DNA of 64,000 nt from Anthoceros angustus (Eukaryota; Plantae; Anthocerotophyta): NCBI GenBank assembly GCA_010909165.1, contig MU008159.1, positions 558,001 through 622,000 of the forward strand. Reading direction: 5' to 3'. Position 1 is the first letter of the stretch. Each line of letters begins with the position of its first letter. Shown here one piece after another: positions 19,789-55,518 of the stretch. The position numbers and the translations under genes are program-made. Under the pieces are notes generated by a model that saw only the letters and a list, made by a program, of their open reading frames with translations, was not told where the DNA came from and did not search any database.

Positions 19789-22700
19789 TCACCAGCACTG
19801 CAGCCATAGTAGAGCAAACCCAGGTAACAGCAAGGTGTGTATCCTTGAAGAGAAGCTGGTTGACGCACTGCTAGCAACCTGAGCTAGCACCAGCCTAGAT
19901 GAAGCGGAATAATCTGTGATGAACTGCAGTGACACAGTGCCATCCCTGTAGTTGCTATCCGTGAAGCCATCCCAACTCGGAGTGCCATTTGTGAAGTGAA
20001 GAATTTTGAAAGTATCGTTGAGGGGAGCAACTAGATCGGTGAATGACACAAATAAGGATATCACTTGGGTGAGCCCGGCCTCTGGACCCAACAATGCAAA
20101 GTCACAGACCTCGAGAACTGCTAGCAAATCCTTGTAGAAGTAGGCAGTTATCCATTCTCCGGCTGAGAGTGGTGCAAACGATGGAAAACATGCCACAGCA
20201 ACACTGACACTGCCTCGGAACTGGGGTGAGTGGACGACTTCAAATCTGAAGTTTTCAACACTACCAGTCAAGTTGACTGGTGCACCTTCTCCATGTAGCT
20301 CTTTCTGAGCGGATAGAAGAGAGAACGACGAACGAAAAACATAGCTTGGAGGCTGCACACCCAACCCCATGCTGTTTGCCACAATCTGTCCCACAAGGAT
20401 CGGCACTTTAGAGGCCATATGCATGACACTGCCCCTGGTGACTGTGCACCCAGCATGTACAGCATTCAGAAGAGCATCCACTGCATCAAAGAAGCAGGAG
20501 TTGTACGGTTGTCCTGCAATGAGAAGCACGGCACATGGTAAGATATTGACAATGAAGAGATTATCTGCAATAAGCACAAGCCAAAACCTCTTTATCACCT
20601 GAAACAGAGGGCACATTAAGCCGATGAAAAGCGATTTGCTGCAGTTTTTCAACCACTAGACCTAAGGATGCATGGAGTTCATTGTCGCTGATATTTCCTG
20701 CGCTGCCAAGAATCTTGCTGTACGCACAGGCGACTACAAGTGCCATATGGGGTCCTGTGCCTGATGATACAGTGTCACTCAAAAAAGGGGGAGGGTACCA
20801 GGGGTCTGTGGTAGAGATCATGCTGAGCATGTCATTTACAATCTGGGCAAGGCCCGGTTCATGTGAGCAGTTAAGTGAGCGTTCACCGATATATTGAGAA
20901 CCAAAAACCTCACTTACCTGAAGTGGACTGTGATATTGGTTTTGACTCTGCCTTGGAGTAAAACTCTTATCCAACAAAGGATTTGATGAGTTCGTTGACA
21001 GAAGACTTCGCCCAGTAACCTTCATGGATTTGCCTCTGGATCCAGAATTCATCACAACTATGCTTGGCAGCTGATAAAGGGTACCCTGAGGAGCATCTTC
21101 ACTTCTGACAGAAACCAGGCCAGGATTTGCCACATATACTTGGAACGTAACCAACCCAGCTTTGACAACGAAGTAAAGGGCTAAGTTCACAGTCGAAAGA
21201 CGCTGGATGACTGTTTGTGTGTTGTTGTCAGTAATGTATCTGAACTCGTACTGTAGCGCTCCTTGCCCCTCACCCTGTGTCCATCCATGAGCCACCAATG
21301 TATAAAGTGTCTGCCCAGCTATGTCAGGTCCATCAGGTGGATATCGAGTCAGCAATACAGTGCCTCCAGAGGGATCAAACCACGTGGAGAAGTCAACCTT
21401 CGCAACACCCTGAGCTCTTTCTAACTTGGCAGAACAGAAGACAGTATATGAAGCACCTCCGACTAATGTGTGCGGCGGAATAAATAGACTACGTTGTCCC
21501 ATGGCAGCAGCTGTAATATCTGAGAACGTCCGTCGATCAGTTCCAGACTGGATGGACCACGTCAAATTATGCCCTTTGGAAAGACACCACAGCGTAACCT
21601 GCTGAGCACTGGACATGCCGTGAGCAGATTCTGCTGCATTCTGGAGAACCAAAGATACCGAGAGCAGATTAGATGGGCTGGCATCAATAATGGATGACGC
21701 AGTCACTCCAGTTCTTCCTTCAGTTAATGGTTCCTTATCCACAGTCACCTACAAAAACAAGAACAACAAGTGTGATTGTTAGTACAGATTGCCAACTGAC
21801 TGAAATATTGCATGCAAACTAAAAAGAACCATTACCGAAAAGTTGTATGTCCCAGTGCCAAGTAGTCCTGCAGGTACGGTAATTATTCTTCCAAAATCAT
21901 TAGATAGTTGGTTCTCAAACAAGAACAAGGCATTGGGCCCCAAGTGAGGTCCACACCTCCAAGTATACTTGATCTGGTAAGGAAGGCCATAGGGATCTAC
22001 AGAATCGTCTGGATCGATTACCACTGCTTCTAACGTAAAGCTTTCAGCTGAGTTGACAGTTCTGCTTCCACCTATGATTCTCAACAACAGGAAAGAAGAC
22101 TCTATGGATAGACGTATCTCTGCTGTCGATTGTGTCGATGGGAAGCCAACAAAGTAGCATGTAACCATGAATGCATAGGTATTGTTGGTTTCAAACTGAT
22201 TCCCTGGTATGCTCAAGAATCGCTCATTCAAAATTGTATCCTTCAGCTCAAGAAGTTGTCCTGCTGACTGTGACCATTGATAACCAAGTGTTGAGGACAA
22301 AGCCGCAGCAGTGCTAGAACCATTCATGCATCTTCCAGATGTATCCACAGACTTGGAGGAAGGAAGAGTCCCAATTGCTTCAATTTGAATCAGTTCAGAA
22401 CGGGTGCCAATGCGGATCTGCTTCAAACAACGATGACAAGGTTAGAGCTGCATTTGCTACCAACGTTCCGACCTGCTCGATGCGTGAAGGACCAGTACAG
22501 GACTAACTTTCATTCATCACCTGATCAGACCCGAAGATGGAAAGTAAAGGGACCGGACTTGCAGTCGCCTTTACACTTCTGGAGGTGCTGGACGAGTCTC
22601 CTCTAAAGTTGACCACAGTCAGTGTGAACTTATAGATCTCACCCTGCTGAAGAGTGCCTGGCTCAAGCGTAACACACATTTGATCTGAAGGGGCGTTCAT

Positions 22701-25700
22701 CAAGACGGCTCTCACAAAATTCACTATAGTTTGATCGCCAGAGCCCTGCACTGAATATGAGAATATCATGAAACGTCCCCCTGACCCAGATGAAGCCGAC
22801 GCATCCAGATATAGGGGGTCACAGGGGCCAATGGCAGTTGGGCAAATGAGGTTTGCAACAGGTGAAACAGGACTGTTCGGCTGCTGCAATGGGACCTGTC
22901 CTTTCACAGGATCAGAAGTACCTGATTGTCACCATCAATCATCACATCAAACATCGGCTTCCTTCCAAGAGTTTGCTATGAATTGCACTCCATGCCAGTC
23001 AGTTTTCCAGATCAACTCGTAAAACTAAACTCCTAAAACCACAGTGGAGTCAAATTACCCTCAGCATTTAAGATGCTGCCACTCTTGATAGTGATGTAGT
23101 CACCGGAGCCGGAATCACCAGGAAGAATTTGAGCAGCATTTCCTAGTGAAATGATGAGAGTCCTAGGATCATAGAAAGTGCACAAGGGGTTTGAGCCAAG
23201 CTTTGGGAGAACAGAGACGTCAAGAAAAGCTGCACATCTATCTGCCCCACTGAGGTTGAACGATCCACTGAAATAGCCTGCACAGAGACGGGACTAATCA
23301 AAGTCATCAAGTGCAAGAAGCCCCAAACATTCAGAGAAACCAATGCACAGGCTTCGGAAAGTCCAGCCTACCACTGTCTGTGTCTTCGTCAAATAAGACC
23401 CTAATCCTGTTGAGGTTATCGGACAGTATGGCACCGGTGAGAGTGGGAGAATGATAGCTCAGGACATCAATCTGAAGCTCTATGACCGTGTTAACCCAGA
23501 TGATGGATATGTTAACCAACCCAGGACTTGTTGGAGTGAATCGAATAGAACCAGAATACTCCTTGGGTTTAGGGTAGAGTCGTAAAGTTGTAGAAGAACT
23601 CTCAGTACATCCGAAGTCCACTAGCAGTGAATAAACGGGACTCGAGAGAACCGACGGCAAAGAACAGTTCAAATTCCCACATACATCTCTTCCCATCACC
23701 GACACTAGGATTTCGTCACCTGCACGAGTAAAGGAAGGTGATACATTTACTGTACTTGTCAAATTCGAAATAGCTCCAGGAACGATCTCCACTGATCCAA
23801 CTACTGTAGACAAGGGGCCCTCTCCAGTGATATGTGTTTGGGAATCGATAAGCATAACATCATAGACATCTGCAACTGTGATAACTGTCGAGATGGAGAA
23901 GGAGGAACTCTTGTCCGTAGGTTCAATGGCAGCTGAGAACTTCAGACCATTCACAGGGAATGAAACTCGACAAATAGATGCTCAGTCAAATTTGGAATGG
24001 TGTATACACCGTTGTAATGCTGTTTGGTGCCACCATACGTCGAACACATACATACTCGCATCAGAAAACACAAAACAGCAGCTGATTGAACTTCCCCAAA
24101 CGCAAATGCATGACAACATGAAATGACCTCAGCGAACAGCATACCAGCTCTAAAATACTGAGCTCTCCAGCTTCCATGTCGTCCAAGGGCCACAGGACAA
24201 ATTCTGAGAGATCAATACGTGAAGACTCCACTGCAATGGAAAATACTCTTGCTTGTACACCATTTAAGAAAATGAACAATTCATAGATCCCTCCAAATAG
24301 CGGAGTGAAATACAGAACATGAAATGCACCACTACTATTCACCATAACTGAGGAACTGCTCAGGGAAGAAACGGGAATATGGTCTGCTCGTGCAGTGAAT
24401 ACATCACCTCCATGTATCCGCTGGAAAAGTTTGGGGTTACCAAACTCATCACATGGAACCAGAGTAATAGCTAGCTCACTGCCTACTTGAATGACATCAT
24501 GGTCATCAAACATTACACCCTCCTTGTACAACGTGTCTGGTGCATAAGTGTCTGGTGCATAGGTTAGGAATGTTGACTCAGATTTCAGATACAAAGTCCT
24601 TGCAGGGTGAGAAGGGCCAGGGACCAGAAACACCACGAATCCGCTATTTTTGATGAAAATGCTGCCGTCGAGGGAGGTTATCTCAACAACATACTTTTGA
24701 GACACTAAGAGATTCACGATAAATCCAAAAGGTCTCTTTTCCGTTGGCCCAACAGGGAATGATCTGTCCCCAATTCTGACAGCAAATGCAACAGTGCCTG
24801 GATCTGGAGATCCTGGCAAATCAATGCCATCAGCATCTCGGGGCTGGATACTCAGAATCAAGTCAGTGCCAACCACTCCCAATACCGGTTGTAACGGATG
24901 GATAGGCACTCCCAGAGAATCAAGGGCAACACTGTCTTTCACAGACCATGATCCAACCTGAGACTTCACCCTCACATACCTAGGCCAAAGCAAGTCATGT
25001 TAGAACCGGCAAGAAAACGAAGATAGCTTATGGGACATAGGCTGCAGTCCTGTCTGAGTGGCTGTGTACCTCGTAGGTCCAACCACCTTCCCATCATACA
25101 TGAGGGAAACTGCCAAGTTGGCCGTAGGGAGAACAGGCACATAAGAAATCTGAGCTGTCCCATTCCCAATTTTTGTAACGATGGGAGGGCTTGGCACAGC
25201 TGATGCTGGACTGAATGCAGCAGTTAGAATCTTAGAAGGCCATGTCAACACAATATTCTTAACTGAATCCTTAATGCGGACATAGAAAAGGGTAGCCTGT
25301 CAGATAACACCAACAAACTCCTGTCAGAAACTAAAGAGATCCTGTCTAGAGAGAGCAGAAATCCAGACAAGCAAAACAGAAACTCTCTTGCAAGTGCAGG
25401 TTTCAAAACTTATCCGCACACGTCATACCTGATTCACTATTCCACCAGAGTCGATGCCAGCTCCAAACAGGCCAAATGTGCGAGGATCCGGATTACCCGG
25501 TAGGACGCGCGTAAGAAAAGCTAAGTTACCAGGATCTCTGACAGTTTTCCCTAGGACATTGACCTGGACTTGCACAACCCCGGTAAAATTTGTATTGAAG
25601 CTCACGTCATATTGTGATCCGTTGCTGTCAACAAAAGGGTAGGGGGTGGTGAAAACAGGAGGGATATCTTCCGATGCTAAGATCACCACCAGCCCAGAGC

Positions 25701-28700
25701 GTACCAGAGCATCAATTGAAACGTTGTTATGAAACTGGTCAAAGAGCTGAATATGGAAAAAACAGGTGCCAACCGTACAACCATTGGGATTAAAGATTAA
25801 TTTTGTACTCTCAGCATCTGCATCAGCGGGTAAACTGTAACATAATCCTGGAAAAACAGCTCATCGTCAAGAAAGGCCAGAACAGTGTGATTGCCACTGA
25901 CTGTATGGGTGTACGATAGTAAGTACGCGCCATCCATCGTATCATTCAATGTTGCAGTTACGTTACTGTCACCGGAGACCAGAACTGCCCCAAAGTTGAG
26001 TCCCCCTCTCCAGAGTCTGTTCCCTGCCCAGTCTCTGCTGACTATTAATATGGTACCAGGTGCGCTGATGGTGATAGCATGTTGGTGGCCATTCAAAGTT
26101 ACAGTGCATTTCGAAAGATCAACAGAACCAGGAATGACAGCAAGCTCCACGTTTACAACCTCGAGCTCCCCATATTTGATCACAATTTGAGTAGCATTTG
26201 GCTGTGCTTCACCAGAACCAGCACGAACACAAAGATAGCTGAACCCATAGAGTCCACGGCCAAGACTGGTCATCATAGCAGATGCCCACTCGTCTGGAGC
26301 GGTCTCAACAATTTTAGTGATGTGAAACACATCGGAATCTGATAGGCGAACATTTCCAGAACTATCTCTAGACTGAAGAGTGATATTATGGGTCTCCCCA
26401 GAAACACATGGTCCAAGTGATGCTGGGTCAACTGTTGAGGTATAAGCACTCACCGGACCTGGAAGTATCTGGCCACCAGAAAAATAAGCTACAATGTCAA
26501 GTCCAGCCCGCCTGATACAACATGGAAACTGCGAATCACAACACTATTAGCAGGAACCTTGATCAAAAAAGGAGAACCCGAAATATTCATAAAACTTCTA
26601 GTCACATATAACAAGGACCACCCAGCCGTCTTCGGAGTGTAGTAGACTTCATAATTTGCTCCCGTCCACAAAGGGAACATAGGATCTGGCTGTAAGTACC
26701 GATCATTCACATCTTCCAAACTTTCAAGACGCACATCAAACAAGCTTCCCGCATCTAATATGGTGTTGTTCAGTACATCATACACATCGATAGTGAACCT
26801 GTGTATGCATCCAGACAAGAGGTAAGTCTCACAGTCACCATGCTCCAACATATGCATGCCTTTCTATCTCAATGCATTAGGATGCACTATTGAACCCTTG
26901 CTCTATTCCCATATTGACCAAGCTAACCTAGTTGATAGGCCTGCATAGATGGGAGCACCTCCACCCACTCCATCACCAGACGCTTTGCAGAAGGGTGTGA
27001 ACACTGGTCCAGCACCAACAAGCAGGTTAGGGAACCGTTTGGTCCCCAGGTCTCCAACTCTCACATCCAAAGTGTATATTCCACTTGCTTGAGCAACATA
27101 TGTGCAAATAGCACCTGCTGGCGAGAAAACAACTTTGCATTTCTGCTGCACAGAGCTCCTTAGACAAAAAGAGATTTTTGTCTCAGCAATCTCTGAGAAA
27201 TTAGTTATGTGATTGTCAAATTCATCATAGAGTTGTACCAAAAATGTTGTCAAAACCCCTGCCAATGCTATGGATGCCCCTTCACCAAGTACCTGAGTCA
27301 GAAACAGCTGTCAACAGAACCTGAACGTACCTGTGCTTGATTAGGTAATAAGCTCCGCTCTCAACAATTCATCATATCTGGTAAAGTGACAACAATGTAC
27401 CCAATAGCAATATATCCAGTGCATACCTGAGTGTTTGGGATGTATGGCACTCCTGGAGATGTTACCACTGAGATTTTTGAAGGGACCAATTCAGTCGATG
27501 ACCCATTACTCAACAGAAAATTAAACGTGTAAAGGCTACCTGTGACACGCAGATGGTACAATATCTTATCTCAGTTTGCTTCCCAGAACTCATCTGAAGA
27601 CACAAATGAGTACATCACAATAGAAGCCTGTGATACAAGGTCCACCTTCATACGCTGCTTGCGTAGGTACAAACTCCAGCACCCAAAAATGATACGGGAT
27701 TCCAGACGGGGTGGTGCCAGAACTGAGGATCAGAGGTGAGTACAAAGTCTCACTATTTGGCTGCAAAATTTGTGCCTCAAAAATATCCAAGGAGCTGACC
27801 ATATAATCCTGCAGATTAGCAAAACAGTCCATTGGCTGGACTTCAATGATTATTTCATCCATGCCTGATCTGTAGGCAGCTAAACTGCTCGCCAGCATGA
27901 CCCCTGTGGTCTCCACGGTGGTGGGACCTGAAACAACCTGTAGACACAGTCAGGTCAAGCAGTTGTCCCACAGCGCTGCGCTAAGGAGTACAAGACATTT
28001 GTTAAGATTTTAGAGTGCTGTTCATTCAGAAGGTCAGCAACCTAAAGCAATTATGGATCCTGAAACTTCAAATATGTTAAGATTTTTAGTCCTGAGGTTA
28101 CTTAGAAGGTAGGCAACCTAGAGCAATCATCGATCACGAAACTTAAAAGATGCACCTGAAGAGTGTAGCCTTTTCTATTTCCACCCAATGGAACTTGTTT
28201 TACACCCACTAGTATGTTGAAATTATACAATCCAGTGCTCTGTGCCAGAAACTCTAGAGAAAATGTTCCATTCCCGTTATCCAATGAAGTAAAATTAGGG
28301 GAATAAGAACCCATATTGTTGCTGTTGATTAGAGACAAGCTTACATAGCCGTTACCAAGATCCGGACTGTAAAACAAAGCGACACCATTTGCATCCACCA
28401 ACTGCACATTAATAGCTGCAATTTGACCCACAACAATGATTCCCCCCAACACTCCAGTAGCTACACACCTCTCCGGAGAAGTAAGTCTCATTTTGGTTTG
28501 GACAACAACTTGAAAGGGGCTCAAAGCTATTGGGCTTCCAGCAAACTGGATGGAAACATTTACAACAGAGACCTTCCTAGCTATGTATGTAACTAGGCAT
28601 TGTCCGTTAAAGGGAGCTATAGTGCTGAACTCCAGGCTAGGATCCGCAGTTATAGACAAATCTTTGCAGATGGCAGGAGAAACATCAGAACCTTGAACAT

Positions 28701-31700
28701 TATTTAGACCATCCTGAGCCTCAAGTAATATGGCACTGCTTGGGCAGGCAAGTTTGGTACAAACAAGAGCTGCAGTCAACCCACATCCACGCGCAATACA
28801 GCTGCCTGGAAGCACATCCCCTGGAAGAACAGTGCCAATGAAAGGACTCCCCACAACCTTCAACTGTGTCAGGTCTGACAAGAAGATTAAATCAAGTAAC
28901 AACTGCCCACTCTTTAGTGGTTGATAGTATAACCAAATCCCACCAGTTTCATCTGTCGATATGTTTGTGAAGGCACTTGCATCTTGACCATGGTAGTCAA
29001 CAAATCCATTTCCGTTCCCAGCTCGCACGCTGATTTTTGCTGCCAAGTAAGGAATGTAACCAATAGATTTCTCACTTGGGACAGACAGCAAATTGCCAAA
29101 CTTATCATAAAGTTGTAGCAATATTGAACTTGGCTGCCCTGCTATTGTGAGATTGTTCCCAAGACCCTGTCCACTGGGCCTTGTTCGAGTGAGATCCACA
29201 GGACCTGCATCAACTTTATAGTAACATATGGTGACCCATGGTCCTCCGATGAGATGATCATTTATAAACAAGGATATGTTATAGAATCCGGCAACCATGA
29301 CAGAAAAGGTAACAGAGTATGTCCCATCATAGTTATCCACAACAAGAGGAGGTGCCACAATATTTTCCGCCAGCATTTCTCCGCCGCTTAATATCTGAAG
29401 GTCACGAAACTCTACATATCCTGAAGACGTGTTCTCCAGGAAGAGCTTACGGTCTTCCAAAGGGAGGGCTGACCACAAACTTTTCGATCGCTGTTTCACC
29501 TTACCACTACCAGAACGGGAGATTATCCCTGGATAGTGTGACACAAGGCAAAAAGCCAACAAGTTACAACCATGCCCAGGCAATTCACAACTCCAAATTA
29601 CTACAGGTTTTACAAGGTCACCTACAGTTTGAAGTAGCATTTCTCTCCTGGTAAGCAAGCTGCACAGCTGCAGATACATTTAGAGCTGGCACAAACCTCC
29701 CAATATTCCCAAAAGAATCTTTTGGTAGTACATCAACCCTCCAATTCAAACCATGACTGTCCGCCCATTGCTGCCCCTGGATAATGTCAGTCTTTGCTAC
29801 ATTCACTTCACCAGGGATAAGACGATACTTGAATGGGCTGCCAGATATCTGCTGGGATGTGCCATTCCCGTATACCAAGCTGATTGAAAGAGAATATAAG
29901 AGATCAAAATAAGCGCTCAACCCTGGATCAAAGTATGTTGCCATAGTAGCACAAAAAGTGACATCATACGTTCCAGCCCTACTTCCTCGGTAGTCGTAGG
30001 AAGGAAAAGTGTCAGCTGGGTATGTCGCAGGAAGGCCTGCAATGGAATAACCAGTCAATATGAACGGAGTCAAAACACAACCAACAACCAGTCCACTGCT
30101 TCCCTCTGTTCACAGAAGGCAAGTCATATCCTAAAAACTGATGAGTGTTGTGACCTTGTGAAATTATCTGAAGAAGCACATTACACTAACCTGTAGGATC
30201 AGGATAAAATCTAACATCAAGTATGTCAACAATTGAATCGTCTTGCATATTTCCATGAACATCTCGAATGAACACTTTCAGCTTCCCAACACTACCTGCC
30301 ACCAATGTTGCACTTGACAGAGAGGTATTCAGTCTTCCAGCAAACGAGTCCACGACCGCAAACGAGTTTTCTGCAGACGATGGAAGAAAAGGAGCAGTCA
30401 CAGTGAAAGGGCTGCCATTCAAATCTCTGTCTCCTATTAAGATCCGACACGAATAATTTCCTGGATAGAGGACACTGTAATTTGCCACCAACTCCAACGT
30501 TCCATCCTGGGAATTGCTACTAGATGAAGTAGTGGCATAAACAGGTGGAAGTGTTTCCGTCTCCAGAACAACAACAAATGCACGTGAAGTATCCCCTGAG
30601 CATGTATTGTTCCATTTATCCAGGCATGTAATTAGCATGATACTTTCAGCTCCACTGACTGTACTAGTAAGCCCCTGTCCTCCCACTATAGTAGATGTGT
30701 CTGCCGAAGGTTGATCTGCTACAACCATGACAGTGCAGTAAAACACAGCACCAAGTCCAGAGACATCAACTGCGGTGAAGCTTATGTTGTACAGTCCAGC
30801 GTCAGTGATGTTGTACAGCACTTCAAAGGTGGCAGAGGATGACATCACACAGACTGGAGCAGTCAGTTCTACACCTGAGTCAATGTTGGAAACTGTGGCA
30901 CTGCAATTTATTCCTTCACTTAGCTCATTTCCATAGGAATCTTGAAGGTAGATGGTTATACTGCCCAATGCACCTGCTATAGTTTCTGTGAGGAAACGAA
31001 CTGTACTCTTGTGGGCCACAGGAGGCCCAGGGTAGAAGTCCACTGGCATGCAACTGGAACCTGAAAGCACAAACAGGAATTAGCTTATGGGACTCCTGAC
31101 ATATTATTAACAGAAATTAGCTCAGTCTGACGGGGCATGTGGAAAACGATGCCCACCTGATAAAAGTTCGTCATTAAGTGTGCATGACATGTTGTAGGCT
31201 CCAGCCTTGGTGACAGTCAGGGAGGCAATCAGGGAGCCATTTTCAGCGACTGATGTGATACCGTATGCAAGCTCTCCTGTGCTAGCTCTAGCCACCAGTG
31301 AGAACTTGTCATTTGATAGAGGATAGGACGATGTATATACCTGCTCATTTAGCCACTCATCAACAGGGACAATCAGGCTTGAGAAAACAGTCCCAACTGG
31401 GCATGAACGTGGTATTTGAGCAGACAGCCTGGTAGTTTTCGAGCTTGTTGCTCCGGGTAATACTGTGATAGACTGATTCAAGAATGCCGTGTCATCAATC
31501 TTGAGCGTCAGGTTGTAGTTTCCAGCTACATTGATGACATAAGATACTATATAGGTCCCATTCTCCAAATCTTCCACACGACCAGAATATGGGGAGGATC
31601 AATAATCAGATTAAGCAATGCCCCTCCAGCATACAGTGGAATGCCGTTTTCATCCGCTGCATCGAGACTGAAGACAGTCTCCTGATTTGCAACAGAACCA

Positions 31701-34700: not shown

Positions 34701-35273
34701 ACTGTGTCTTGATGAAAGCTTTCCTGCCACGTTGAACTCATATATCCTGTCATCGATAGGTTCACACACCTCCTCCTCGGAGCAAGAAAGGACATGAAAA
34801 GAATACGAGCCGATTGCCAACACAGAAATTGTTATAGCATACGCGCCTGGAACAGAGTCAATCGGAGCTGATGGGAAATACTCGTCCTGTGGAGAGACAA
34901 CTGCACGCAGCATAACATCTACGACAGGTTGCTCCCCATGAGTCGTGTTGGGAGCAAAAATAGTCAAACTTGCTCCTGAACCAGTGTCTCTCACGACAAC
35001 AACGTAGCCTTGCGTGGACTGCCTGCTATAGGACTTCCGCACACCAAAGTCTGCCGCAGTGAAAGTGACCACGTAACATGACCATAGCAGACCCAGCAAA
35101 CACAGATATATGGTGAAGCCAACCTTGATGCTCCTTGCCGCTCCCTGAAAAAATGAAATCCACACACAACGTGTCAACCTGGAAGACACTATCTGCGTAA
35201 CCCTATGCAGCCCCCACCATGCGGTCCAGCTCTTATCCTCCATGCAAAATATCACCGTAATCGTTCTAAACAA
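19789..35273 (-). CDS. Giant multi-exon filamin/Ig-like-repeat + PKD/REJ-module protein, copy A (both ends unresolved; apparent 1-nt frameshifts)
   Basis: About 20+ exons joined by GT-AG introns. N-terminal hydrophobic segment VGFTIYLCLLGLLWSCYVVTFTAA. Many filamin-type repeats (xAG..x.I...D..GN; D..DGTY.V.Y/F; G.Y...V; I.GSPF.V.V.PG). C-terminal REJ-like region (GPCDPLYLDASASSGSGGR; IIGGSRTV..FTLEAVVIDPDD..YTWRC; LFIPPHTLVGGASY; PSGGTV..GQTLYTLVAHGW..LQYEFRY). Confidence 0.82.
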
Positions 35274-36016
35274 ACGAGTCCGTCAAACAGAGATCAAATA
35301 CTACCAGCTACTCGATGTGACAACTACTACTTCTACTCTGAATCCATCATCATGCAACACATACCATGACGAGCAGCAAGTCACACTATCTTCTCGGGGC
35401 AAGACACGCTCCACCCAAACTCGCCGTGACACACTCTTTATTATGTAACCACAGAGTAAGCCACCAGACCCAGAGTTTCATACGACATCCTGGCATCAGG
35501 ACATCAGCATCTCCTGCTCCATTTTGCAAACGCAGCCCACTCCAGATGCCAGAGGCGCGGGGATTGGACAGAGCGACGAAAGAACGCAGACTCCCTCTGC
35601 CCGCCAGCGTTACGGACGCACGCCACCTATGTTGGTTCACCAAACTGGAACCCATCCATAGATTTCCCACAGGCAGGCTTTACCCGCCTGATCCTCAAGA
35701 CAGCAAGTTCCCGGATGTGCACGCTTGGCTGGAAAATCAAGGAATCAGGAGCCGATGTCTTGCGATTGCAAAGATGGTCCATCTCGGAAGCCGACTGCCA
35801 CACCTTCTTGTCTGTGTACATATACATATCACAGCCAGAGGTCCTTCCTACACAGAAGGATCTCCCTCCCTAGCAAAATCCCCTTACCTTCATCACCTCC
35901 ATTGAATGCATTTCTGAGCATGGGGACCAGACTTGCCTTCAGAGATCAGCGTGTCCCGGGACATGGTCTCTGTACTCCGTCCCTTCATCGGGACTAACCC
36001 ATTTAGTAAATGGGCT

Positions 36017-39279: not shown

Positions 39280-39401
39280 TACACAAGATAACAACATAGA
39301 AAACGTAGAAGTTGATTAGTCCAAGCTTATTGTTTTGCATTACACAAGATAACAACATAGAAAACGTAGAAGTTGATTAGTCCAAGCTTATTGTTTTGCA
39401 T
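39280..39401. repeat. Perfect 61-bp tandem duplication
   Basis: tacacaagataacaacatagaaaacgtagaagttgattagtccaagcttattgttttgcat x2. Confidence 0.95.
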
Positions 39402-39571
39402 TGAAGTTTCAAACGTGAAAGCCGAGCTCATGAGATTGCTATGCTCCAGCCTTGGCGCGTCGCCTCCAAAGCATATTAAAACACACAAGTTACAGCTCTG
39501 CACACACCTCGTCAAAGTATATTTTAACACACAAATTATGGCTTCGGACCCACCTCAGTCTGATAGTATTA

Positions 39572-39800
39572 GAGGCTTCCATCAGAGACTTCCATAAGCA
39601 ATCAATGCTACTGGTCAATGACATCACAATATATGAGTATCACATATGAGAATTAAAGGCTTCCATAAGCTGCCAACACTACTAGTCAATGCCATCACAA
39701 CATATGAGCATCACATATAAGAATCACGGGCTTCCATAAACTATGAACACTACTAATCAATCAAATCAATGACATCACAACATGAGAGCTTTAGTACTCC
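39572..39800. repeat. Degenerate ~70-bp tandem units (cttccataa..tactagtcaatg.catcacaa.atatgag)
   Basis: Three imperfect copies are visible; probably the retroelement 5' leader/LTR region. Confidence 0.6.
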
Positions 39801-40135
39801 ATAGTTTCTCTCTATGATAACTAAAACATAATTATCACTTGTGGTGATACAATCATTTCTGATAATATTTTTGCTTGGTGTTCGAATGTTGCCCTTATAG
39901 GTACTCTTCCAGTTCTTCCATACGTTCACCATCACTTGCTGAACCTTCAAGATCACTTGCTGAACCTTCCCCGTCACCTGCTGAATTGAAGCAAACAGAC
40001 GATTTTTCTTGAGGAGCCGAGGAAAGAGACTAAAAGTTTGTGAAGTCTTTTTTTCCAGAAAGTGAAAGAAAGACGGGGCTGACCTGATTTCATCCAGTTG
40101 CAGGATATAGCAGAAGACCTGTTCACGACAAGAGT

Positions 40136-46100: not shown

Positions 46101-49100
46101 GAGCTGAATATGGAAAAACAGGTGCCAACCGTACAACCATTGGGATTAAAGATTAATTTTGTACTCTCAGCATCTGCATCAGCGGGTAAACTGTAACATA
46201 ATCCTGGAAAAACAGCTCATCGTCAAGAAAGGCCAGAACAGTGTGATTGCCACTGACTGTATGGGTGTACGATAGTAAGTACGCGCCATCCATCGTATCA
46301 TTCAATGTTGCAGTTATATTACTGTCACCGGATACCAAAACCGCACCAAAGTTGAGTCCCCCACTCCAGAGTCTGTTCCCTGCCCAGTCTCTGCTGACTA
46401 TTAATATGGTACCAGGTGCGCTGATGGTGATAGCATGTTGGTGGCCATTCAAAGTTACAGTGCATTTCGAAAGATCAACAGAAGCAGGAACGACAGCAAG
46501 CTCCACGTTTACAACCTCGAGCTCCCCATATTTGATCACAATTTGAGTAGCATTTGGCTGTGCTTCACTAGAACCAGCACAAACACAAAGATAGCTGAAC
46601 CCATAGAGTCCACGACCAAGATTGGTCATCATAGCAGATGCCCACTCGTCTGGAGCGGTCTCAACAATTTTAGTAATGTGAAACACATCGGAATCTGATA
46701 GGCGGACATTTCCAGAACTATCTCTAGACTGAAGAGTGATATTATGGGTCTCCCCAGAAACACATGGTCCAAGTGATGCTGGGTCAACTGTTGAGGTATA
46801 AGCACTCACCGGACCTGGAAGTATCTGGCCACCAGAAAAATGAGGTACAATGTCAAGTCCAGCCCGCCTGATACAACATGGAAACTGCAAATCACAACAC
46901 TATTAGCAGGAACCTTGATCAAAAAAGGAGAACCCGAGACATTCATAAAACTTCTAGTGACATGTAACAAGGACCACCCAGCCGTCTTCGGAGTGTAGTA
47001 GACTTCATAATTTGTTCCCGTCCACAAAGGGAACATAGGATCTGGCTGTAAGTACCGATCATTCACATCTTCCAAACTTTCAAGAAGCACATTGAACAAG
47101 CTTCCCCCATCTAATATGGTGTTGTTCAGTACATCATACACATCGATTGTGAACCTGTGTGTGCATCCAGACAAGACGTTTGAAATATAAGAATAGAAGT
47201 CTCGCAGTCAACGTGCTACAACATATACATGCCTTTTTGTCTTGATGCATTAGGATGCACTATTGAACTCCTGCTCTATTCCCATATTAACCAAGCTAAC
47301 CTGGTTGATAGGCCTGCATAGATGGGAGCACCTCCACCCACTTCATCACCAAGTGCTTTGCAGAAGGGTGTGAATACTGGTCCAGCACCAACAAGCAGGT
47401 TAGGGAACCGTCTGATCCCCAGGTCTCCAACTCTCACATCCAAAGTGTATATTCCACTTGCTTGAGCAACATATGTGCAAATAGCACCTGCTGGCGAGAA
47501 AACAACTCTGCATTTCTGCTGCACAGAGCTCCTTAGACTAAAAGAGATTTTAGTCTCAGTAATCTCTGAGAAATTAGTAATGTGGTTGTCAAATTCATCA
47601 TAGAGTTGTACCAAAAACGTTGTCAAAACTCCTGCCAATGCCATGGATGCCCCTTCACCAAGTACCTGAGTCAGAAACAGCTGTCAACAGAACCTGAACG
47701 TATCTGTGCTTGATTAGGTTATAAGCTCCGCTCTGAACAATTCATCACATTTGATGCAGTGACAACAAGCAACCCAATTTGGACAACGTTTGCATGACAC
47801 TCCCGTTGCCACATTCTGAAAAACTTCCAGACTAACCATATATCGAATGCATACCCGAGTATTTGGAATAAATGGCCCTCCTGGAGATGTTACGACTGAG
47901 ATCTTTAATGGGACCAATTCCGTGGATGACCCATTATTCAACAAAAAATTGAACGTGTAAAGGCTACCTGTTACACGCAGATGGTACAATATCTTATCTG
48001 AGCTTGCTTCGCAGAACCCACCAAAAGATAAAACGAGTACATTACAACAGAAAGCTGTGATACAAGGTTCACCTTCAAACGCTGCTTGCACAGGCACAAA
48101 CTCCAGCACCCAAAAATGATACGGGATTCCAGAAAGGGTGGTGCCAGAACTGAGGACCAGAGGTGAGTACAAAGTCTCACTATTTGGCTGCAAAATTTGT
48201 GCCTCAAAAAAATCCAAGGAGCTGACGATATAATCCTGCAGATTACCGAAACTGTCCATTGGCTGGACTTCAATGATTATCTCATCCATGCCTGATCTGT
48301 ATTCAGCTAAATTGCTTGCCAGCATGACGCCTATGGCGTCCACGAGAGTGGGACCTGAAACAACCTGCAGGCAGAGTCTGGTCAAGCTGTTGTCCCAACA
48401 TTTTTTAAGATTTGATAGTGCTGAGGTTATTCAGAAGGAGACAACCCAAAGCAATCATTGATCACGAAGCTTGAAAAATGTTGAGATTTTATGCTGCTGA
48501 GGTTACTCAAAAGATTGGCAACTTAGAGCAATCGTCCATCATGAAACGTAAAAGATGGACCTGTAGAGTGTAGCCGTTTCTATTTCCGCCCAACGGAATT
48601 TGTTTTACACCAACTAGTATGTTGAAATGATACAATCCAGTGCTCTGTGCCAGAAACTCTAGAGAAAATGTTCCATTTCCATTATCCAACGATATAAAGC
48701 TAGGGGAATAAGAACCCATATTGCTGCTGTTGATTAGAGACAAACTTACAAAGTTGTTACCAAGATCTGGACTGTGAAACAAAGCGACACCATTTACATC
48801 CACCAACTGCACATCAATACCTGCACTTTGACCTGCAACAATCATTCCCCCCAAGATGCCAGTAGCTACGCACTTCTCTGGAGAAGTGACTCCCACATTG
48901 GATTGGACAACAACTTGAAAGGGGCTCAAAGCTATTGGGCTTCCAGTATACAGGATGGAAACATTTACAACAGATACCTTCCTGGCTATGTATGTGACTA
49001 GGCATTGTCCGTTGAAGGGAGCTAAAGTGCTAAATTCCAGACTAGGGTCAGCGGCTATGGACAAATCTTTGCAGATGGCAGGAGAAACATCAGAACCTTG

Positions 49101-52100
49101 AACATTATTTAGACCATCCTGAACCTGAACTAAGATGGGATTGCTTGGGCAGGCAAGTTTGGTACAAACAAGAACAGAGGTCAACCCACATCCACGTGCA
49201 ATACAGTTGCCTGGAAGAACATCCCCAGGTAGAACACTGCCAATGAAAGGACTCCCCACAACCTTGGAGTCTGTGAGGTTTGTTGAGAAGATCAAATCGA
49301 GGAACAACTGCCCACTCTTTAATGGTTGATAGTATAACCACATCCCACTAGTTTCATCTACCGATATGTTTGTGAAGGCACTTGCATCTTGACCATGGTA
49401 GTCAACAAATCCATTTCTGTTCACCTCACGGATGCTGATTTTTGCTGCCAAGTAAGGAATGTAACCAGTAGATTTCTCACTTGGGACAGACAACAAATTG
49501 CCAAACTTGTCACTGAGTTGTAGCAATATTGAACTTGGCTGCCCTGCTATTGTAAGGTTGTCCCCAAGGCCCTGTCCACTGGGCCTTATTCTAGTGAGAT
49601 CAACAGGACCTGCATCAACTCTATAGTAACACATGGTGACCCAAGGTCCTCCGATGAGATGATCATTTATGAACAAGGATATGTTATAAAATCCTGCAAC
49701 CATGACAGAAAAGGTAACAGAGTATGTCCCGTCATAGTTATCCACAACGAGAGGAGGTGCCGCAATATTTTCCGCCAGCATTTCTCCGTCCCTTAATATC
49801 TGAAGGTCACGAAACTCTGCATATCCTGAAGAAGTGTTCTCCAGGAAGAGCTTACTGTCTTCCAAAGGGAAGGCTGACCACAAACTTTTCGATAGCTGTT
49901 TCTCATTTCGAATCCCAGAATCCGAGATTATCCCTGGATAGTGTGACACAAGGCAAAAAGCCAACAAGTTACAACCAACCCAGCCAATTCACAACTCCAA
50001 GTTACTAACAAGTTTTACGAGGTCACCTACCCTCTGAAGAAGCAATTCTATCCTGGTTATGAAGCTGCACAGCTGCCGATACATTTAGAGCTGGCACAAA
50101 CCTCCCAATATTCCCAAAGGAATCTTTTGGTAGTACATCAACCCTCCAATTCAAACCATGACTATCCGCCCATTGCTGTCCCTGGATAATGTCAGTCTTT
50201 GCTACATTCACTTCACCAGGGATAAGGCGATACTTGAATGGGCTGCCAGATATCTGCTGGGATGTGCCATTCCCGTAAACCAAGCTGATTGTAAGGAAAT
50301 ATGGGAGATCAAAATAAGCGCCCAACCCTGAATCAAAGTATGTTGCCATAGTAGCAGAAAAAGTGACATCATACGTTCCATCCCCACTTCCTCGGTAGCC
50401 ATAGGAAGGAAAAGTGTCAGCTGGGTATGTAGCAGGAAGGCCTGCAATGGAATAACCAGTCAATATGAACGGAGTCAAATCACAACCAAGAAGCAGTTTT
50501 CCACTGCTTCCCTCGAGAAGTCATATGCTTAGAACTGATGAATGCTGTGACATTGTGAAATTGTCTGAAGAAGCACACTACACTAACCTGTAGGATCAGG
50601 ATAAAATCTAACATCAAGTATGTCAACGATTGAATTGTCTTGCATATTTCCACGAACATCTCGAATGAACACTTTCAGCTTCCCAACACTGCCTGCCACC
50701 AATGTTGCACTTGACAGAGAGGTATTCAGTCTTCCAGCAAACGAGTCCATGACTGCAAACGAGTTTTCTGCAGACGATGGAAGAAGAGGAGCAGTCACAG
50801 TGAAAGGGCTGCCATTCAAATCTCTGTCTCCTATTAAGATCCGACAAGAATAATTTCCTGGATAGAGGACACTGTAATTTGCCACCAACTCCAATGTTTC
50901 GTCCTGGGAGTTGCTACTAGATGAAATAGTGGCATAAACAGGTGGAAGTGTTTCTGTCTCCAAAACAACAACAAATGCACGTGAAGTATCCCCTGAGCAT
51001 GTATTGTTCCATTTATCCAGGCATGTAATTAGCATGATACTTTCAGATCCGCTGACTGTACTAGTAAGCCCTTGGCCTCCCACTATAGTAGATGTGTCTG
51101 CTGAGGGTTGATCTGCTACAACCGTGACATTGCAGTAAAATGCAGCACCAAGTCCAGAATCATCAACTGCGGTGAAGCTTATATTGTACAGTCCAGCTTC
51201 AGTGATGTTGTACAGCACTTCAAAGGTGGCAGAGGATGACATCGTACAGACTGGAGCAGTCAGTTCTACACCTGAGTCAATGTTGGAAACTGTGGCACTG
51301 CAATTTATTCCTTCACTTAGCTCATTTCCATAGGAATCTTGAAGGTAGATGGTTATGCTGCCCAATGCACCTGCTATAGTTTCTGTGAGGAAACGAACTG
51401 TACTCTTGTGGGCCACAGGAGGCCCAGGGTAGAAGTCCACTGGCATCCAACTGGAACCTGAAATCACAAACAGGAATTAGCTTATGGGACTCCTGACATA
51501 TTATTAACAGAAATTAGCTCAGTCTGACGGGGCATGTGGAAAACGATGCCCACCTGATAAAGGTTCGTCATTAAGTGTGCATGACACGTTGTAGGCTCCA
51601 GCCTTGGTGACAGTCAGGGAGGCAATCAGGGAGCCATTTTCAGCAACTGATGTGATACCGTATGCAAGCTCTCCTGTGCTAGCTCTAGCCACCAGTGAGA
51701 ACTTGTCATTTGATAGAGGATAGGACGATGTATATACCTGCTCATTTAGCCACTCATCAACAGGGACAATCAGGCTTGAGAAAACAGTCCCAACTGGGCA
51801 TGAACGTGGTATTTGAGCAGACAGCCTGGTAGTTTTCGAGCTTGTTGCTCCGGGTAATACTGTGATAGACTGATTCAAGAATGCCGTGTCATCAATCTTG
51901 AGCGTCAGGTTGTAGTTTCCAGCTACATTGATGACATAAGATACTATATAGGTCCCATTCTCCAAATCTTCCACACGACCAGAATATGGGGAGGATCAAT
52001 AATCAGATTAAGCAATGCCCCTCCAGCATACAGTGGAATGCCGTTTTCATCCGCTGCATCGAGACTGAAGACAGTCTCCTGATTTGCAACAGAACCAAAA

Positions 52101-55100
52101 AGTCCAGGGCACGTGTCCACAAAAGGAAATCCCCCACAGACTATAAACTTGGCAGCATCAAGAGATCTTATGCCTATAGAATCCAAGACAGGTACCAATG
52201 CAGGGCTTCCTTTCACATCCACGCCGAACCATGACACAGAAACCGAGTAGTTACCAGGCTGAGGAGTGACATACGTTACACCATACCTTCCTCCCCAGTT
52301 GTGCTTGTCAACAATAGTTATCATTCCTAGATTGCAGAGTCCCGACTTGCAAAGTTGGACCCGGAAGGGCTCACCAAAACTTCCAGGGTCATTTTTTGAA
52401 TTGCCAACTGAGTCACGAGCATTGATGTAGAAGGTGGCAGGCATGTTAATAACTGTTCCCCTCAACCCCACGCCTGAGATGTAAGTTTGCCTTACATCCA
52501 AATGACCAGTACTCTGTACGGATGAGTAAATGATGGACTCATTTTTGAATGCGATTGTTAAATGTGACACGCCTGCTTGCATGGTGGTGAAGTTGAACGC
52601 AAAAAAACTTGCAGAATAAATCAAATGTAAAGGAGAAACATGGACTTGAAGAGAGGAAATCTCATTTTCAGCTCCCGGGAAAGGGCTGATAGTTCCCGTT
52701 ATTTTAAACAAAGCCATGTCGTCCAGAGTCACCTTCACTATGTTTCCATACAAGTCTCGGTTAGTAACAAGCATCGATACGTTTTGACCTGCAAGGCTGT
52801 GAATTATACTGGGAGTAGTGAATAACATCTGTCTACAATCTATTTCCCCTGGTGCAACAGTAACTTGAGTTTCCAACTTTTCATGTTCCCAGCCAAAGGA
52901 TATGGCATAAACCCCAGCTCGCTCTGTGATGAATGCCACATTGTACACACTCCCGAAAATGCTAGTCACTTGGACATATGCATTGACATCTTCATGTGTG
53001 GCCCGCACAGTTACAAATTCATGAACCAGGAGGCCATCGTCATCAAGACTGACATTGTTTCCAAAACTGTCCATCAGCTGCAACTGGAATGAGCCACTTT
53101 CTCCGGCAATTGTGTCCATTACTTCACTCAGTATGCAATCTAGTGGAGAGACAGGACCGGAAATGACAAACAGTTCGAAACCAGTAAGGAAAGGCTTGTC
53201 ATCCAGCAAGACAGTCACCTGCAGCAAACGCAGTGGATCCCTTCAAGGACTTTCAAACATGGGACTTGGGACAAGTGAGATCCATGTGTCCACCAAGCTT
53301 CACAATCTGCCTGAGCATAACAGTAAATTCTCACAAGACTGACCAGACCAGTACACCACACCAACGAAGTAGATGCAGACTACCCCTTTTTGCCTACAAA
53401 CTAGCAAGGCAAAGCAGAGCAGAGGAGTCACCTGGTATTCCTGGGCAATGGTGATTCCAATAATTATGCCCTCAAAGTGTTCACCAACACCTAAAAGGGG
53501 GTAGGAAAAGTTGTAACCCCCCTTGAATATGTTCAGGATGATTTGCTTTGCAGCTAGTCCACTGCTCCCAATCTTGTTATCGTATGAGTCTCTGACATCA
53601 AGCTTGACCAAGATTGCACTTCCCGCCGAGACATTGCTACTGAGGGAAAGAAGTGAATTGGCTCCAAACGGACTGGACGGTTCGACAGTCAAGGAGACCC
53701 CTGATCCTACAAGAGGGGTCAGACCAAGAAAAGATTCCTCTACAAGGGTACATTGACCAAAATAGGCCTTCACAGTATACTCCCGCGCCAATCTAACATG
53801 AAATACTGCTGTATAGCTCCCTGCAACTGGAGCTCCAATGGCATCCACAATTGGGTTGATGTCTCCAAACAGGGGATTTTCATCAGTGTCGAAGAGCCCA
53901 ACCATCAGCTGAAGTTCAGCGAGTCCATTTTGAAAGGAGCTGGCAGCTGGGTTACCTGAGCCCACCACAGACATCACCGGTGTCGTCATATTATAGAGGG
54001 TACAAATAGTGCTAAAATTGAAGTGACAGCACCTTTTCAAAACCATGGATGCCCTCCACAACCATCAATGCCAGAAATTCTTTTCAAGATTTACCATATA
54101 CGTCCACCAGCTCAACACTGTATGAGATTGAGGTGCCAGCTTTCACTCTGGAAAAAGTAGCTCTTATTGATGACTTGGATGCCAATGCCATCCCAGATAC
54201 AACGTTCAAAACATAAGGCATATTCATTATTGGTGTGTCACCAAGCAAAACTGAAATAGAATATTTTCCAGGATAGGTGACGTTAATGCCAAAACCGCAG
54301 TGGACATTAGCACGGGAATCTGGACAGCGATCAGCAAACAGAACTAGAGATTCGTTGTTTGCTGCTGACATAACGATGGTGAAGTTATTGATCACCTCAT
54401 AAGACGCTTCAGAGCATCTGCAAGAGATGCATCCACAAAAAATATACAGCCAGATTAGTAGTGATCGGAAAGCTTTATCACTCTAAGAAGAGGTTTTGGT
54501 CCATGACAGTTGCGCTAATTTGCTCACTATGCAATTTTCTTCTCAGATCAGGTACTTCACTAACCTAATGTTCAGTGTGTGTTCGCCCACCAGGACTACG
54601 GACGAAGATATCTCGTGATCCGGTTCCAGGTAAAACTTCGCTGCATCCTCTGACTCATTCTGGAACGTGCTGAAGTTTCGCTGACCATCAGAAACAGGTG
54701 ATCCTTCCACGGTTACGGATACATAGTAAGTCTCCACTCTGATGAGTGTGAAGCGAACTGAATAGACTCCTTGGCCAAGTGGCAATATTGTCGCTGGCCT
54801 TAACAGCGAAGTACCATCTGAGCTCGTTATGTCAACTGAGAAAGGAATAGGATGAATAATCACAGTCTTGACCAGTCTATTTTCATCTCTGGCTGTGATG
54901 TTGAAGCCCACCTTCTGCCCCACCCTATACATTTCTTGCAATCTGTGGCAGCCATGAAAACGTGTTCGTCATTTCCCTGGGAAGCAAACTAATGCAGGTC
55001 AGAGAGTCGACAACAAAATGGATTTTGTACCCGGATACGAAACTCTGACTAGCTGAAAGCTTTCCTGCCACGTTGAACTTATATATCCTGCCATCGATGG

Positions 55101-55518
55101 GTTCACACACCTCCTCCTCGGAGCAAGAAAGGACATGGAAAGAATAAGAGCCGATTGACAAGACAGAGATTGTTATTGCATAAGCGCCTGGGACAGAATC
55201 AATCGGAGCCGACGGGAAATATTCATCCTGTGGAGAGACAATTGCACGCAGCATAACATCTGCGAGAGGTTGCTTCCCGTCAGTCGTGTTAGGAGGAAAA
55301 ATAGTCAAACTTGCTCCTGAACCAGTGTCTCTCACGTCCACAACGTATCCTTGCGTGGAATGCCTGCTGTAGGACTTGAGAACACCAAAGTCTGCCGAAG
55401 TGCAAGCGACCACGTAACATTTCCATAGAAAGCCCAGCAACCACAAACTTACGGTGAAGCCACCTTTGATGCCCCTTGCGGCTCCCTGAAAAAATGAAAT
55501 CCACCCACAACGCGTCAA
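40136..55518 (-). CDS. Giant filamin/Ig-like-repeat + PKD/REJ-module protein, copy B (tandem paralog)
   Basis: Collinear with copy A exon for exon (e.g. 40951-42108 = 20561-21748; 51944-53227 = 31547-32830). Homology extends over ~40060-56300 vs ~19720-36170. Confidence 0.82.

Follow-up and report, generated by a model that had tools for sequence, protein, structure and literature searches.

Tandem genes for giant Ig-repeat surface proteins with a REJ module and a predicted GAIN domain in the hornwort Anthoceros angustus

Introduction

GAIN and REJ domains are known from textbooks as parts of the adhesion GPCRs and polycystins of animals. The polycystin-1 family (PKD1, PKD1L1-3, PKDREJ and suREJ1-3) has a heavily glycosylated ectodomain, in which a long row of Ig-like domains leads up to a REJ module near the membrane and, after it, a GAIN domain. 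REJ-GAIN modules are likewise contained in sea-urchin sperm receptors. For land plants, a literature search retrieved no paper describing GAIN or REJ domains.

A second group of surface proteins, including Chlamydomonas FUS1 and Arabidopsis GEX2, carries filamin/invasin-type Ig-like repeats. Their whole ectodomain consists of 7 Ig domains, followed by one transmembrane (TM) segment and a cytoplasmic tail. The Dictyostelium gelation factor (1WLH) has been reported as the template for both GEX2 and FUS1 (bioRxiv 10.1101/2021.09.03.458930), and in Marchantia a GEX2 orthologue is already present and expressed in sperm (PMC6290024).

The locus described here, found in a 64,000-nucleotide stretch of the Anthoceros angustus genome (the window), resembles both groups. 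It shares the Ig-REJ-GAIN order and the glycosylated ectodomain with the polycystin-1 family, but comes from a land plant, carries filamin/GEX2-type instead of PKD-type Ig domains, ends in a GPI-signal-like C-terminus and lacks the GPS cleavage motif, TM1, PLAT domain, 11-TM region and channel. It shares the repeat type with FUS1/GEX2, but its repeats number at least 17 and are joined by REJ-GAIN, a TM segment and cytoplasmic tail are missing, and the protein is about 4 times larger.

Gene models and tandem duplication

Two tandem paralogues with a DNA identity of 91-94% were identified in the window. The splice models were obtained with a DP gene finder and corrected using the GT..AG sites conserved between the copies and the homology to a second hornwort-like genome (L001). 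Positions of copy 2 are given in brackets below.

19789-35367, minus strand: copy 1 gene from ATG to stop, spliced model of 24 exons and 4,204 aa
40136-55610, minus strand: copy 2 gene from ATG to stop, spliced model of 24 exons and 4,214 aa
35365-35367 (55608-55610), minus strand: start codon, the whole of exon 1 (ATG/GTATGT donor)
35368-36046 (55611-56290), minus strand: upstream segment common to both copies, 78% identical
36047-40059, no strand: AT-rich spacer between the copies with small tandem repeats, unduplicated, its ORFs without Pfam match

Both models agree with the original prediction of about 16 kb and 4,000-4,500 aa per copy. The tandem arrangement claimed there was confirmed by DNA alignment within the window, in which 19715-27405 and 40060-47778 are 94.4% identical and 27410-35178 and 47838-55519 are 91.5% identical. 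Upstream, the identity drops to 78% (35301-36046 vs. 55542-56290), and the common segment in front of the start codon is probably the 5′UTR/promoter. The DUO1 motif RRCSGTT is absent within 2 kb upstream of copy 1 and copy 2, but as an argument against expression in gametes this carries no information, since GEX2 in Marchantia is not driven by MpDUO1. Past the stop codon, the duplicated DNA extends for only 75 bp, and the end of a convergent transferrin-like gene lies about 650 bp downstream of copy 1, which leaves no space for exons encoding a channel.

The conserved start codon is linked to exon 2 by an intron whose donor and T-rich acceptor are found in both copies and which contains a large indel; only copy 1 offers an alternative in-frame ATG, at 35243. 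The computational exon models leave three or four splice sites ambiguous, and exon 12 of copy 2 requires a copy-specific donor at 47800.

It is very unlikely that either or both of the copies are silent or decaying duplicates, their open models resulting from flexible splice-site choice. Such decay would fit the broken frame obtained when the exon 12 donor of copy 1 is forced on copy 2, but neither model contains an internal stop, an ORF of about 12.6 kb is kept in both, and 17 of 23 introns were predicted independently at identical positions with conserved GT..AG sites. Furthermore, the dN/dS of 0.37 over 4,129 codons between the copies indicates constraint on both, and both therefore appear to be maintained. 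The dS is patchy (0.01-0.40). The copies are read as recent paralogues under purifying selection that were partly homogenised by gene conversion. They are plain paralogues and do not form a two-component system.

N-terminus and Ig-like repeat array

35052-35144 (55393-55485), minus strand: predicted signal-peptide coding part of exon 2, judged by eye
24159-35144 (44516-55485), minus strand: Ig-like repeat array, exons 2-18, about 3,000 aa, based on Pfam, repeat HMM and PDB matches
23059-23965 (43416-44322), minus strand: exons 19-20 between the Ig array and the REJ module, without domain assignment

In exon 2, a basic n-region leads into a hydrophobic core of about 20 residues, which is followed by the small residues T-A-A (T-S-A in copy 2). 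Provided that translation starts at the conserved ATG directly before the intron, the N-terminal hydrophobic segment noticed in the original prediction has the pattern of a signal peptide in both copies.

The predicted filamin/Ig-like array was verified by Pfam searches of exon-sized ORFs, which revealed Filamin (PF00630, best 2e-18) and Ig_GEX2_N (PF23616, 3.7e-10, 40-41 bits at a cut-off of 27) in both copies and a weak match to Invasin_D3. An iterated repeat HMM gave 18 matches per copy in exons 3-18, corresponding to about 17 repeats. In the PDB, the top sequence match of the repeats is 1WLH (6e-11), the same relative as for GEX2 and FUS1 (bioRxiv 10.1101/2021.09.03.458930), and filamin was matched as well. 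In line with the noted richness in N-glycosylation sequons, 64 and 68 were counted in the two copies, twice the chance level of 33 +/- 5.5 in composition-matched shuffles.

Exons 2, 4, 5 and 9 and parts of exons 10 and 18 have no domain assignment. Exons 19-20 gave no match in the Pfam search, and exon 19 matched the Ig profile weakly in hhalign (probability 60%); both exons show 97-99.5% amino acid identity between the copies and are conserved in L001 and in the Marchantia paleacea homologue (L002). Overall, little or no domain assignment could be made for exons 19-21 and the first ~560 aa of the protein, and a non-Ig ligand-binding tip is therefore conceivable.

These repeats bear on the idea that the proteins are gamete adhesins, which on the naked surface of spermatozoid or egg would mediate species-specific gamete attachment through FUS1/GEX2-type Ig domains joined to a sperm-REJ-type module. 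We regard this role as rather unlikely. At the level of domains, the proposed link to FUS1/GEX2 stands, with several repeats scoring higher than the Pfam cut-off for Ig_GEX2_N and with the shared 1WLH template. It does not extend to the architecture, and the canonical 7-Ig single-pass form is ruled out by the repeat number, the REJ-GAIN part and the lack of any sequence after the hydrophobic C-terminal tail. The sperm-expressed GEX2 orthologue of Marchantia and the dN/dS of 0.37, which gives no sign of positive selection, also speak against a gamete role.

REJ module, last exon and C-terminal tail

20599-22921 (40959-43278), minus strand: REJ module, exons 21-23, based on Pfam
19792-20513 (40139-40869), minus strand: predicted GAIN-like domain, last exon, based on AF2 fold comparison
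19792-19872 (40139-40219), minus strand: C-terminal tail with a Ser/Ala/Thr-rich stretch, a short polar spacer and 15 hydrophobic residues

The REJ-like C-terminal module anticipated by the original prediction was recovered as Pfam REJ (PF02010) above the 25-bit cut-off in copy 1 (6.1e-9, 21779-22426) and copy 2 (7.2e-9, plus 2.6e-8 on the next exon). Exon 23 is significantly similar in sequence to the REJ parts of polycystin-1-like protist proteins, namely P0007 (REJ and multiple TM) and P0010 (REJ, GPS and TM). The low-confidence AF2 model of the module consists of two beta-sandwiches resembling FnIII tandems, followed by helices; the helical end of exon 23, its C-terminal ~120 aa, is probably GAIN subdomain A.

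The last exon, directly after REJ, is predicted to fold as a GAIN domain. Its AF2 model (pLDDT 73, pTM 0.73) was built on an alignment of 5 sequences. The top Foldseek matches were the GAIN domains of BAI3, CD97, BAI2, CELSR1 and latrophilin (E 7.5e-5, probability 1.0), and VIA Z values of 12.3-9.0 were obtained for eleven adhesion-GPCR GAIN structures, compared with at most 7.4 for the next fold class. GAIN chains likewise ranked ahead of the next fold class in a search independent of Foldseek, and ESM Atlas neighbours of the last exon carry GPS/7tm_2 or PLAT+GPS. About 190 of 215 residues can be aligned to adhesion-GPCR GAIN domains (CD97/ADGRE5, BAI3, latrophilin, CELSR1, GPR56), but at 8-13% identity, without an autoproteolysis motif and without a 7-TM domain behind it. 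Pfam GPS was unmatched, and neither His-Leu-Thr/Ser nor cysteines in the last two strands were found.

In the C-terminal tail, the stop codon directly follows the 15 hydrophobic residues in both copies, and the pLDDT is below 50. By rule of thumb, the tail looks like a GPI-attachment signal or else a vestigial TM1. The combination of N-terminal signal-peptide pattern and C-terminal GPI-signal pattern, judged by eye, is conserved in both copies. Besides the signal peptide, no window of TM grade was detected, nor a PLAT domain, 11-TM channel, 7-TM region or cytoplasmic domain. The original prediction had therefore correctly denied an 11-TM region and a canonical PKD1; a canonical polycystin-1 is ruled out by the missing GPS cleavage motif, PLAT domain and 11-TM channel. 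The minus-strand orientation, the predicted GAIN fold and the GPI-like C-terminus are features beyond that prediction.

In polycystin-1, REJ and GAIN together make up the mechanosensory ectodomain cassette, as GAIN does in adhesion GPCRs, a parallel that could point to a mechanosensor or wall-integrity receptor of this kind that signals via dissociation of the GAIN domain. Given a last exon without GPS cleavage motif or cysteines, the stop right after the hydrophobic tail and the lack of any 7-TM/11-TM region, PLAT or cytoplasmic domain, such a receptor is highly improbable, and cell-autonomous GAIN signalling is already largely refuted.

Homologues and distribution

Collinear homologues, with a Filamin array followed by REJ, were found in L001, which shares its run with a hornwort-like DnaJ, in Marchantia paleacea (L002), in contigs from Sphagnum-sample metagenomes (L003/L004) and in L005. 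The Marchantia paleacea homologue comprises KAG6557914.1 ("hypothetical protein Mapa_000092") and an adjacent filamin gene model. It is collinear over 31954-20663 of the window, with 34% identity in exon 23, a Pfam REJ match of 3.2e-30 and conserved cysteines in the GAIN region. Unlike the hornwort copies, it is annotated as separate genes and continues after GAIN with a Pro-rich segment; this segment is Pro/Lys-rich in the Marchantia and Sphagnum-sample homologues, and no membrane anchor was found behind GAIN in them. In L005, an ORF with a single-pass TM lies downstream. For these reasons, GPI tethering to the membrane may be peculiar to the lineage of the two copies described here.

Among 1.84 billion proteins, no vascular-plant homologue of exon 23 (REJ/GAIN part) was found. 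Ferns and lycophytes gave no match to the REJ/GAIN part; their proteins had appeared in a different protein library. Homologues of this part came from bryophyte-grade material only (hornwort-like, Marchantia paleacea and Sphagnum-sample contigs), and the REJ-GAIN cassette is thus present in all three bryophyte-grade groups sampled.

For a gamete role, the missing vascular-plant homologue and the occurrence of REJ-GAIN in sea-urchin sperm receptors are favourable, and so, very weakly, is the unmatched vegetative transcriptome of Nothoceros, whose DnaJ surfaced in a different protein library. However, ferns and lycophytes have flagellated sperm and are nevertheless unmatched, which weakens the suggested connection to flagellated sperm.

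The distribution rather tracks the gametophyte-dominant bryophytes. This would suit a vegetative surface or matrix protein, i.e., a wall-spanning or shed (GPI-released) gametophyte glycoprotein for cell-cell or cell-mucilage adhesion or for contact with microbes (cyanobionts, fungi). GPI-type tails are common among plant wall-associated proteins, and tandem duplication with gene conversion fits an expanding surface-protein family, but the Pfam search revealed no carbohydrate-binding or wall-related domain. We consider a vegetative role possible, though on the unlikely side.

Proposed role

Each copy probably encodes a giant surface protein that is secreted, heavily N-glycosylated and tethered to the membrane, and that acts as a long adhesion rod. 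The signal peptide would route the protein into the secretory pathway, and the ~3,000 residues of filamin/GEX2-type Ig-like domains would form a long rod, which if extended might exceed 100 nm. Next to the membrane, the rod would carry the REJ and GAIN cassette that is otherwise a hallmark of the PKDREJ/suREJ/polycystin-1 family. Since the HL/T site and the GPS cysteines are lacking, GAIN is likely to remain uncleaved and would serve as a rigid stalk instead of a tethered-agonist switch. The GPI-signal-like tail, a putative anchor, would replace TM1, PLAT and channel, so that the protein by itself would neither conduct ions nor transmit a signal. Adhesion or recognition would most likely be a function of the distal Ig domains, whose binding partner would be found on another cell or else in the matrix of wall or mucilage.

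Significance

The annotation of the Marchantia paleacea homologue, which is split into separate hypothetical proteins, is corrected by these results. It is quite doubtful that bryophytes retain an ancient, undescribed surface-protein family, with REJ-GAIN fused to a FUS1/GEX2-type Ig array, for recognition between free-swimming sperm and egg; if so, REJ-GAIN would have been used in gamete recognition before the plant-animal divergence or been recruited convergently. In the hornwort genes, the REJ-GAIN cassette is detached from channel and GPCR and joined to Ig repeats of the plant and algal gamete-adhesin kind. According to the fold models, they would represent a natural case in which a GAIN domain has neither autoproteolysis nor a transmembrane partner. 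The family is a candidate for surface recognition in bryophytes, be it of gametes, tissue or microbial partners, and can be tested in Marchantia and Anthoceros.

Tandem duplication and gene models

The self-comparison of the window revealed a single tandem duplication (19715-35178 against 40060-55519) with an identity of 91.5-94.4%, and the minus strand carries all long open frames of the pair. The 750 bp upstream of either duplicated unit are 78% identical to each other. The two paralogues and their neighbours are:

6371-7540, minus strand, single-ORF gene with DnaJ and DUF1977 domains (DNAJB12-like), neighbour of the pair
18488-19144, plus strand, ORF with a transferrin domain (Pfam, 2.3e-17), convergent with copy 1
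19789-35367, minus strand, copy 1
40136-55610, minus strand, copy 2

The AT-rich 4-kb spacer between the copies is bordered by small tandem repeats at 36018-36167 and 39280-39985, near the duplication breakpoints. At 11934-16684, minisatellites with periods of 18-185 bp are densely packed; within this field a block of ~0.85 kb with common repeat units is present twice (13943-14776 and 15542-16413). A strong skew of G over C and of T over A is found from 12 to 14 kb.

Gene models were predicted for each copy separately by dynamic programming, using codon log-odds trained on long ORFs and GT..AG introns. In these separate predictions, 17 of the 23 introns are located at exactly homologous positions; for the other six, sites were chosen that have GT..AG in both copies and agree with tblastx homology to the genomic contig L001, which harbors a collinear homologue. 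The predicted proteins comprise 4,204 aa (copy 1) and 4,214 aa (copy 2), each encoded by 24 exons with no internal stop, in agreement with the original prediction of a tandem pair of giant proteins of ~4,000-4,500 aa spanning ~16 kb each. The intron 9 acceptor has a 20-codon ambiguity in the model, and exon 12 of copy 2 requires its own donor.

The translation start is best placed, judging from the sequence, at an ATG directly abutting a GTATGT donor. This ATG and a T-rich acceptor are kept in both copies, and the first intron, which separates the two, differs by a large indel. With this start a classical signal peptide results in both copies (judged by eye), which accounts for the hydrophobic N-terminal segment noticed originally; an alternative ATG at 35243 is present in copy 1 only. 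Pfam, structure and sequence searches were done per exon (numbered from the 5′ end of the gene), without joining the exons into one protein.

Over 4,129 aligned codons, the copies differ by a dN of 0.042 and a dS of 0.114 (ratio 0.37, Nei-Gojobori). Both appear to be under constraint, and no sign of positive selection was found at the resolution of this dN/dS comparison. Between single exons dS ranges from 0.01 to 0.40, a mosaic that points to gene conversion in the central part of the gene and to an older divergence at both ends.

Ig-repeat ectodomain

The Pfam search with exon-sized ORFs identified identical families in both copies, namely Filamin/ABP280 repeats (best 2e-18), the GEX2 N-terminal Ig-like model PF23616 with 40-41 bits against a curated cut-off of 27, and a weak match to Invasin_D3. 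Iterating a repeat HMM on the exons and the homologous loci resulted in 18 matches per copy, corresponding to ~17 repeats in exons 3-18. Figures of ~30 Ig domains are an estimate by protein length only and not a count of detected repeats. Neither Pfam nor hhalign against the Ig profile gave a confident domain assignment for exons 2, 4, 5, 9, 19-20 and parts of 10 and 18, hhalign returning just two moderate matches (exon 10 and exon 19) among the unassigned pieces. In the PDB, the nearest sequences are those of filamins and of the Dictyostelium gelation-factor rod (1WLH, 6e-11), the templates that are also reported for GEX2 and FUS1 (bioRxiv 10.1101/2021.09.03.458930).

N-X-S/T sequons are found 64 times in copy 1 and 68 times in copy 2, versus 33 +/- 5.5 in residue-shuffled exons, an excess that fits the pattern of a secretory glycoprotein. 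The predicted filamin/Ig-like array rich in sequons is thus confirmed.

REJ and GAIN-like modules

The REJ-like module predicted for the C-terminal part was recovered by Pfam as PF02010 near the 3′ end of both copies (6e-9 and 7e-9); in copy 2 the next exon also matches REJ, at later positions of the model (2.6e-8). Exon 23 (383 aa) was searched by phmmer against 1.84 billion representative proteins, and 12 proteins were found in total. These include an ORF on the Logan genomic contig L001 (60% identity), the Marchantia paleacea protein KAG6557914 (34% identity; REJ 3e-30), fragments from Sphagnum-sample metagenomes, and two polycystin-1-like proteins of protists, both with REJ, which is accompanied by multiple TM segments in one and by GPS and TM segments in the other. 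The AlphaFold2 model of exon 23 is of low confidence (pLDDT 58) and its beta part resembles FnIII tandems. Such a likeness is expected for REJ; at this pLDDT, however, the matches are supportive only. The helical end of exon 23 fits subdomain A of a GAIN domain. PDB sequence searches with exon 23 and exon 24 gave zero matches.

An alignment of the last exon, exon 24 (240 aa), and four homologous segments was the input for an AlphaFold2 model (pLDDT 73, pTM 0.73). Foldseek placed the GAIN domains of BAI3, CD97, BAI2, CELSR1 and latrophilin on top (E from 7.5e-5, probability 1.0). With VIA-align, eleven GAIN chains reached Z 12.3-9.0 over ~190/215 residues, the next fold class staying at or below 7.4, and a Foldseek-independent scan of 48,161 chains left the ranking unchanged, with GAIN first. 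The ESM Atlas neighbours of the model belong to GPS/7tm_2 and PLAT+GPS clusters (TM 0.55-0.67), and an ESM Atlas feature search with the C-terminal homologue was uninformative (scores <=0.76). The last two strands contain neither the HL|T site nor the GPS cysteines, and autoproteolysis is therefore unlikely.

The copy 1 model of this exon (m449eecd2da34, 19792-20511) also matches the axonemal doublet-microtubule chains 9fqr_Hn, 9y6s_9f and 8glv_AE (Z 8.6-9.2), which suggests a GAIN-like fold within some flagellar protein.

Past the last strand, a Ser/Ala/Thr-rich stretch is followed by a short polar spacer, 15 hydrophobic residues and the stop codon, an order kept in both copies. Given the signal peptide, this tail has, by eye, the pattern of a GPI-attachment signal. 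In polycystins and adhesion GPCRs TM1 follows the GAIN domain, and the hydrophobic tail occupies exactly that place here. Further 3′ exons are not possible, because the duplicated block stops just 75 bp past the stop codon and the convergent transferrin-like gene ends ~650 bp from copy 1. The membrane-embedded parts are thus lacking, and the original view that there is no polycystin 11-TM channel region holds.

Homologues and distribution

The contig L001 shares the run SRR33208241 with a DnaJ that is 64% identical to that of the window, and therefore represents a second hornwort-like genome with a collinear homologue. The window's DnaJ/DUF1977 protein itself has its best named relative in the hornwort Nothoceros aenigmaticus (67%) and is ~51% identical to those of liverworts, a lycophyte and ferns alike. 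These values suggest a hornwort distant from Nothoceros as the source of the window. In Marchantia paleacea (MUAA02000002.1, 310316-333888) collinearity covers window positions 31954 to 20663, the gene extending past the 5′ end of the locus as compared. In the public annotation this one collinear giant gene is broken up into two or more hypothetical proteins, namely a 1,000-aa filamin model and a 1,190-aa REJ model (KAG6557914) at the least.

Two loci from Sphagnum microbiome metagenomes (PMC9584203) have a GC content of 38%, probably represent host DNA, and show the order Filamin array, REJ and the same C-terminal domain. The same order is seen in the GC-rich locus L005 (GC 58%). Its REJ/GAIN-like exons are followed downstream by a plus-strand ORF (13869-15548) that encodes two internal repeats and a Pro/Thr-rich stalk, together with one TM segment and an acidic tail. 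Possibly this ORF is the real C-terminal end of the L005 homologue; the ancestral form would then seem to have been single-pass. For the Marchantia and Sphagnum-sample homologues, the downstream sequence was also examined for a membrane anchor, and nothing convincing was found.

No vascular-plant protein matched exon 23 at E 1e-3 among the 1.84 billion representative proteins; fern, lycophyte and seed-plant proteins are known to be present in the library of the DnaJ search, which is a different one. Word-index protein searches, started from the REJ protein of Marchantia and from a Sphagnum-sample filamin ORF of 1,371 aa, returned only the query itself or metagenome proteins; this result carries little weight, since a length filter leaves giant gene models out of such searches. 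At the sensitivity used, the family looks bryophyte-restricted.

Architecture and candidate role

The hornwort protein shares the ectodomain logic of polycystin-1, PKDREJ and suREJ (Ig-like array, REJ, GAIN), whereas all their membrane-embedded and cytoplasmic parts are missing. With FUS1 and GEX2 it has Ig domains of the same kind in common. Since it lacks some defining features of each family, it is filed as a new architectural variant and as a member of neither. Most likely the mechanism would be passive: a long, glycosylated, lipid-tethered rod would bind a partner by its distal domains, with REJ-GAIN as its uncleaved stalk.

The pair had been read as candidate gamete or sperm adhesins of plants with flagellated sperm. 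The apparent bryophyte restriction does not match the spread of flagellated sperm, which weakens this link. A gamete-surface role is rather unlikely, and a vegetative, matrix or microbe-contact role only slightly less so. A motif scan found no DUO1 motif within 2 kb upstream of either copy; this absence was rejected as evidence on a gamete role, since in Marchantia neither GEX2 nor HAP2 is under the control of MpDUO1 (PMC6290024). A limited literature check turned up no paper that connects bryophytes with REJ, GAIN or polycystin modules. The Marchantia GEX2 orthologue is expressed in sperm (PMC6290024), and the Ig-REJ-GAIN family would therefore be an addition to GEX2 and not its replacement.
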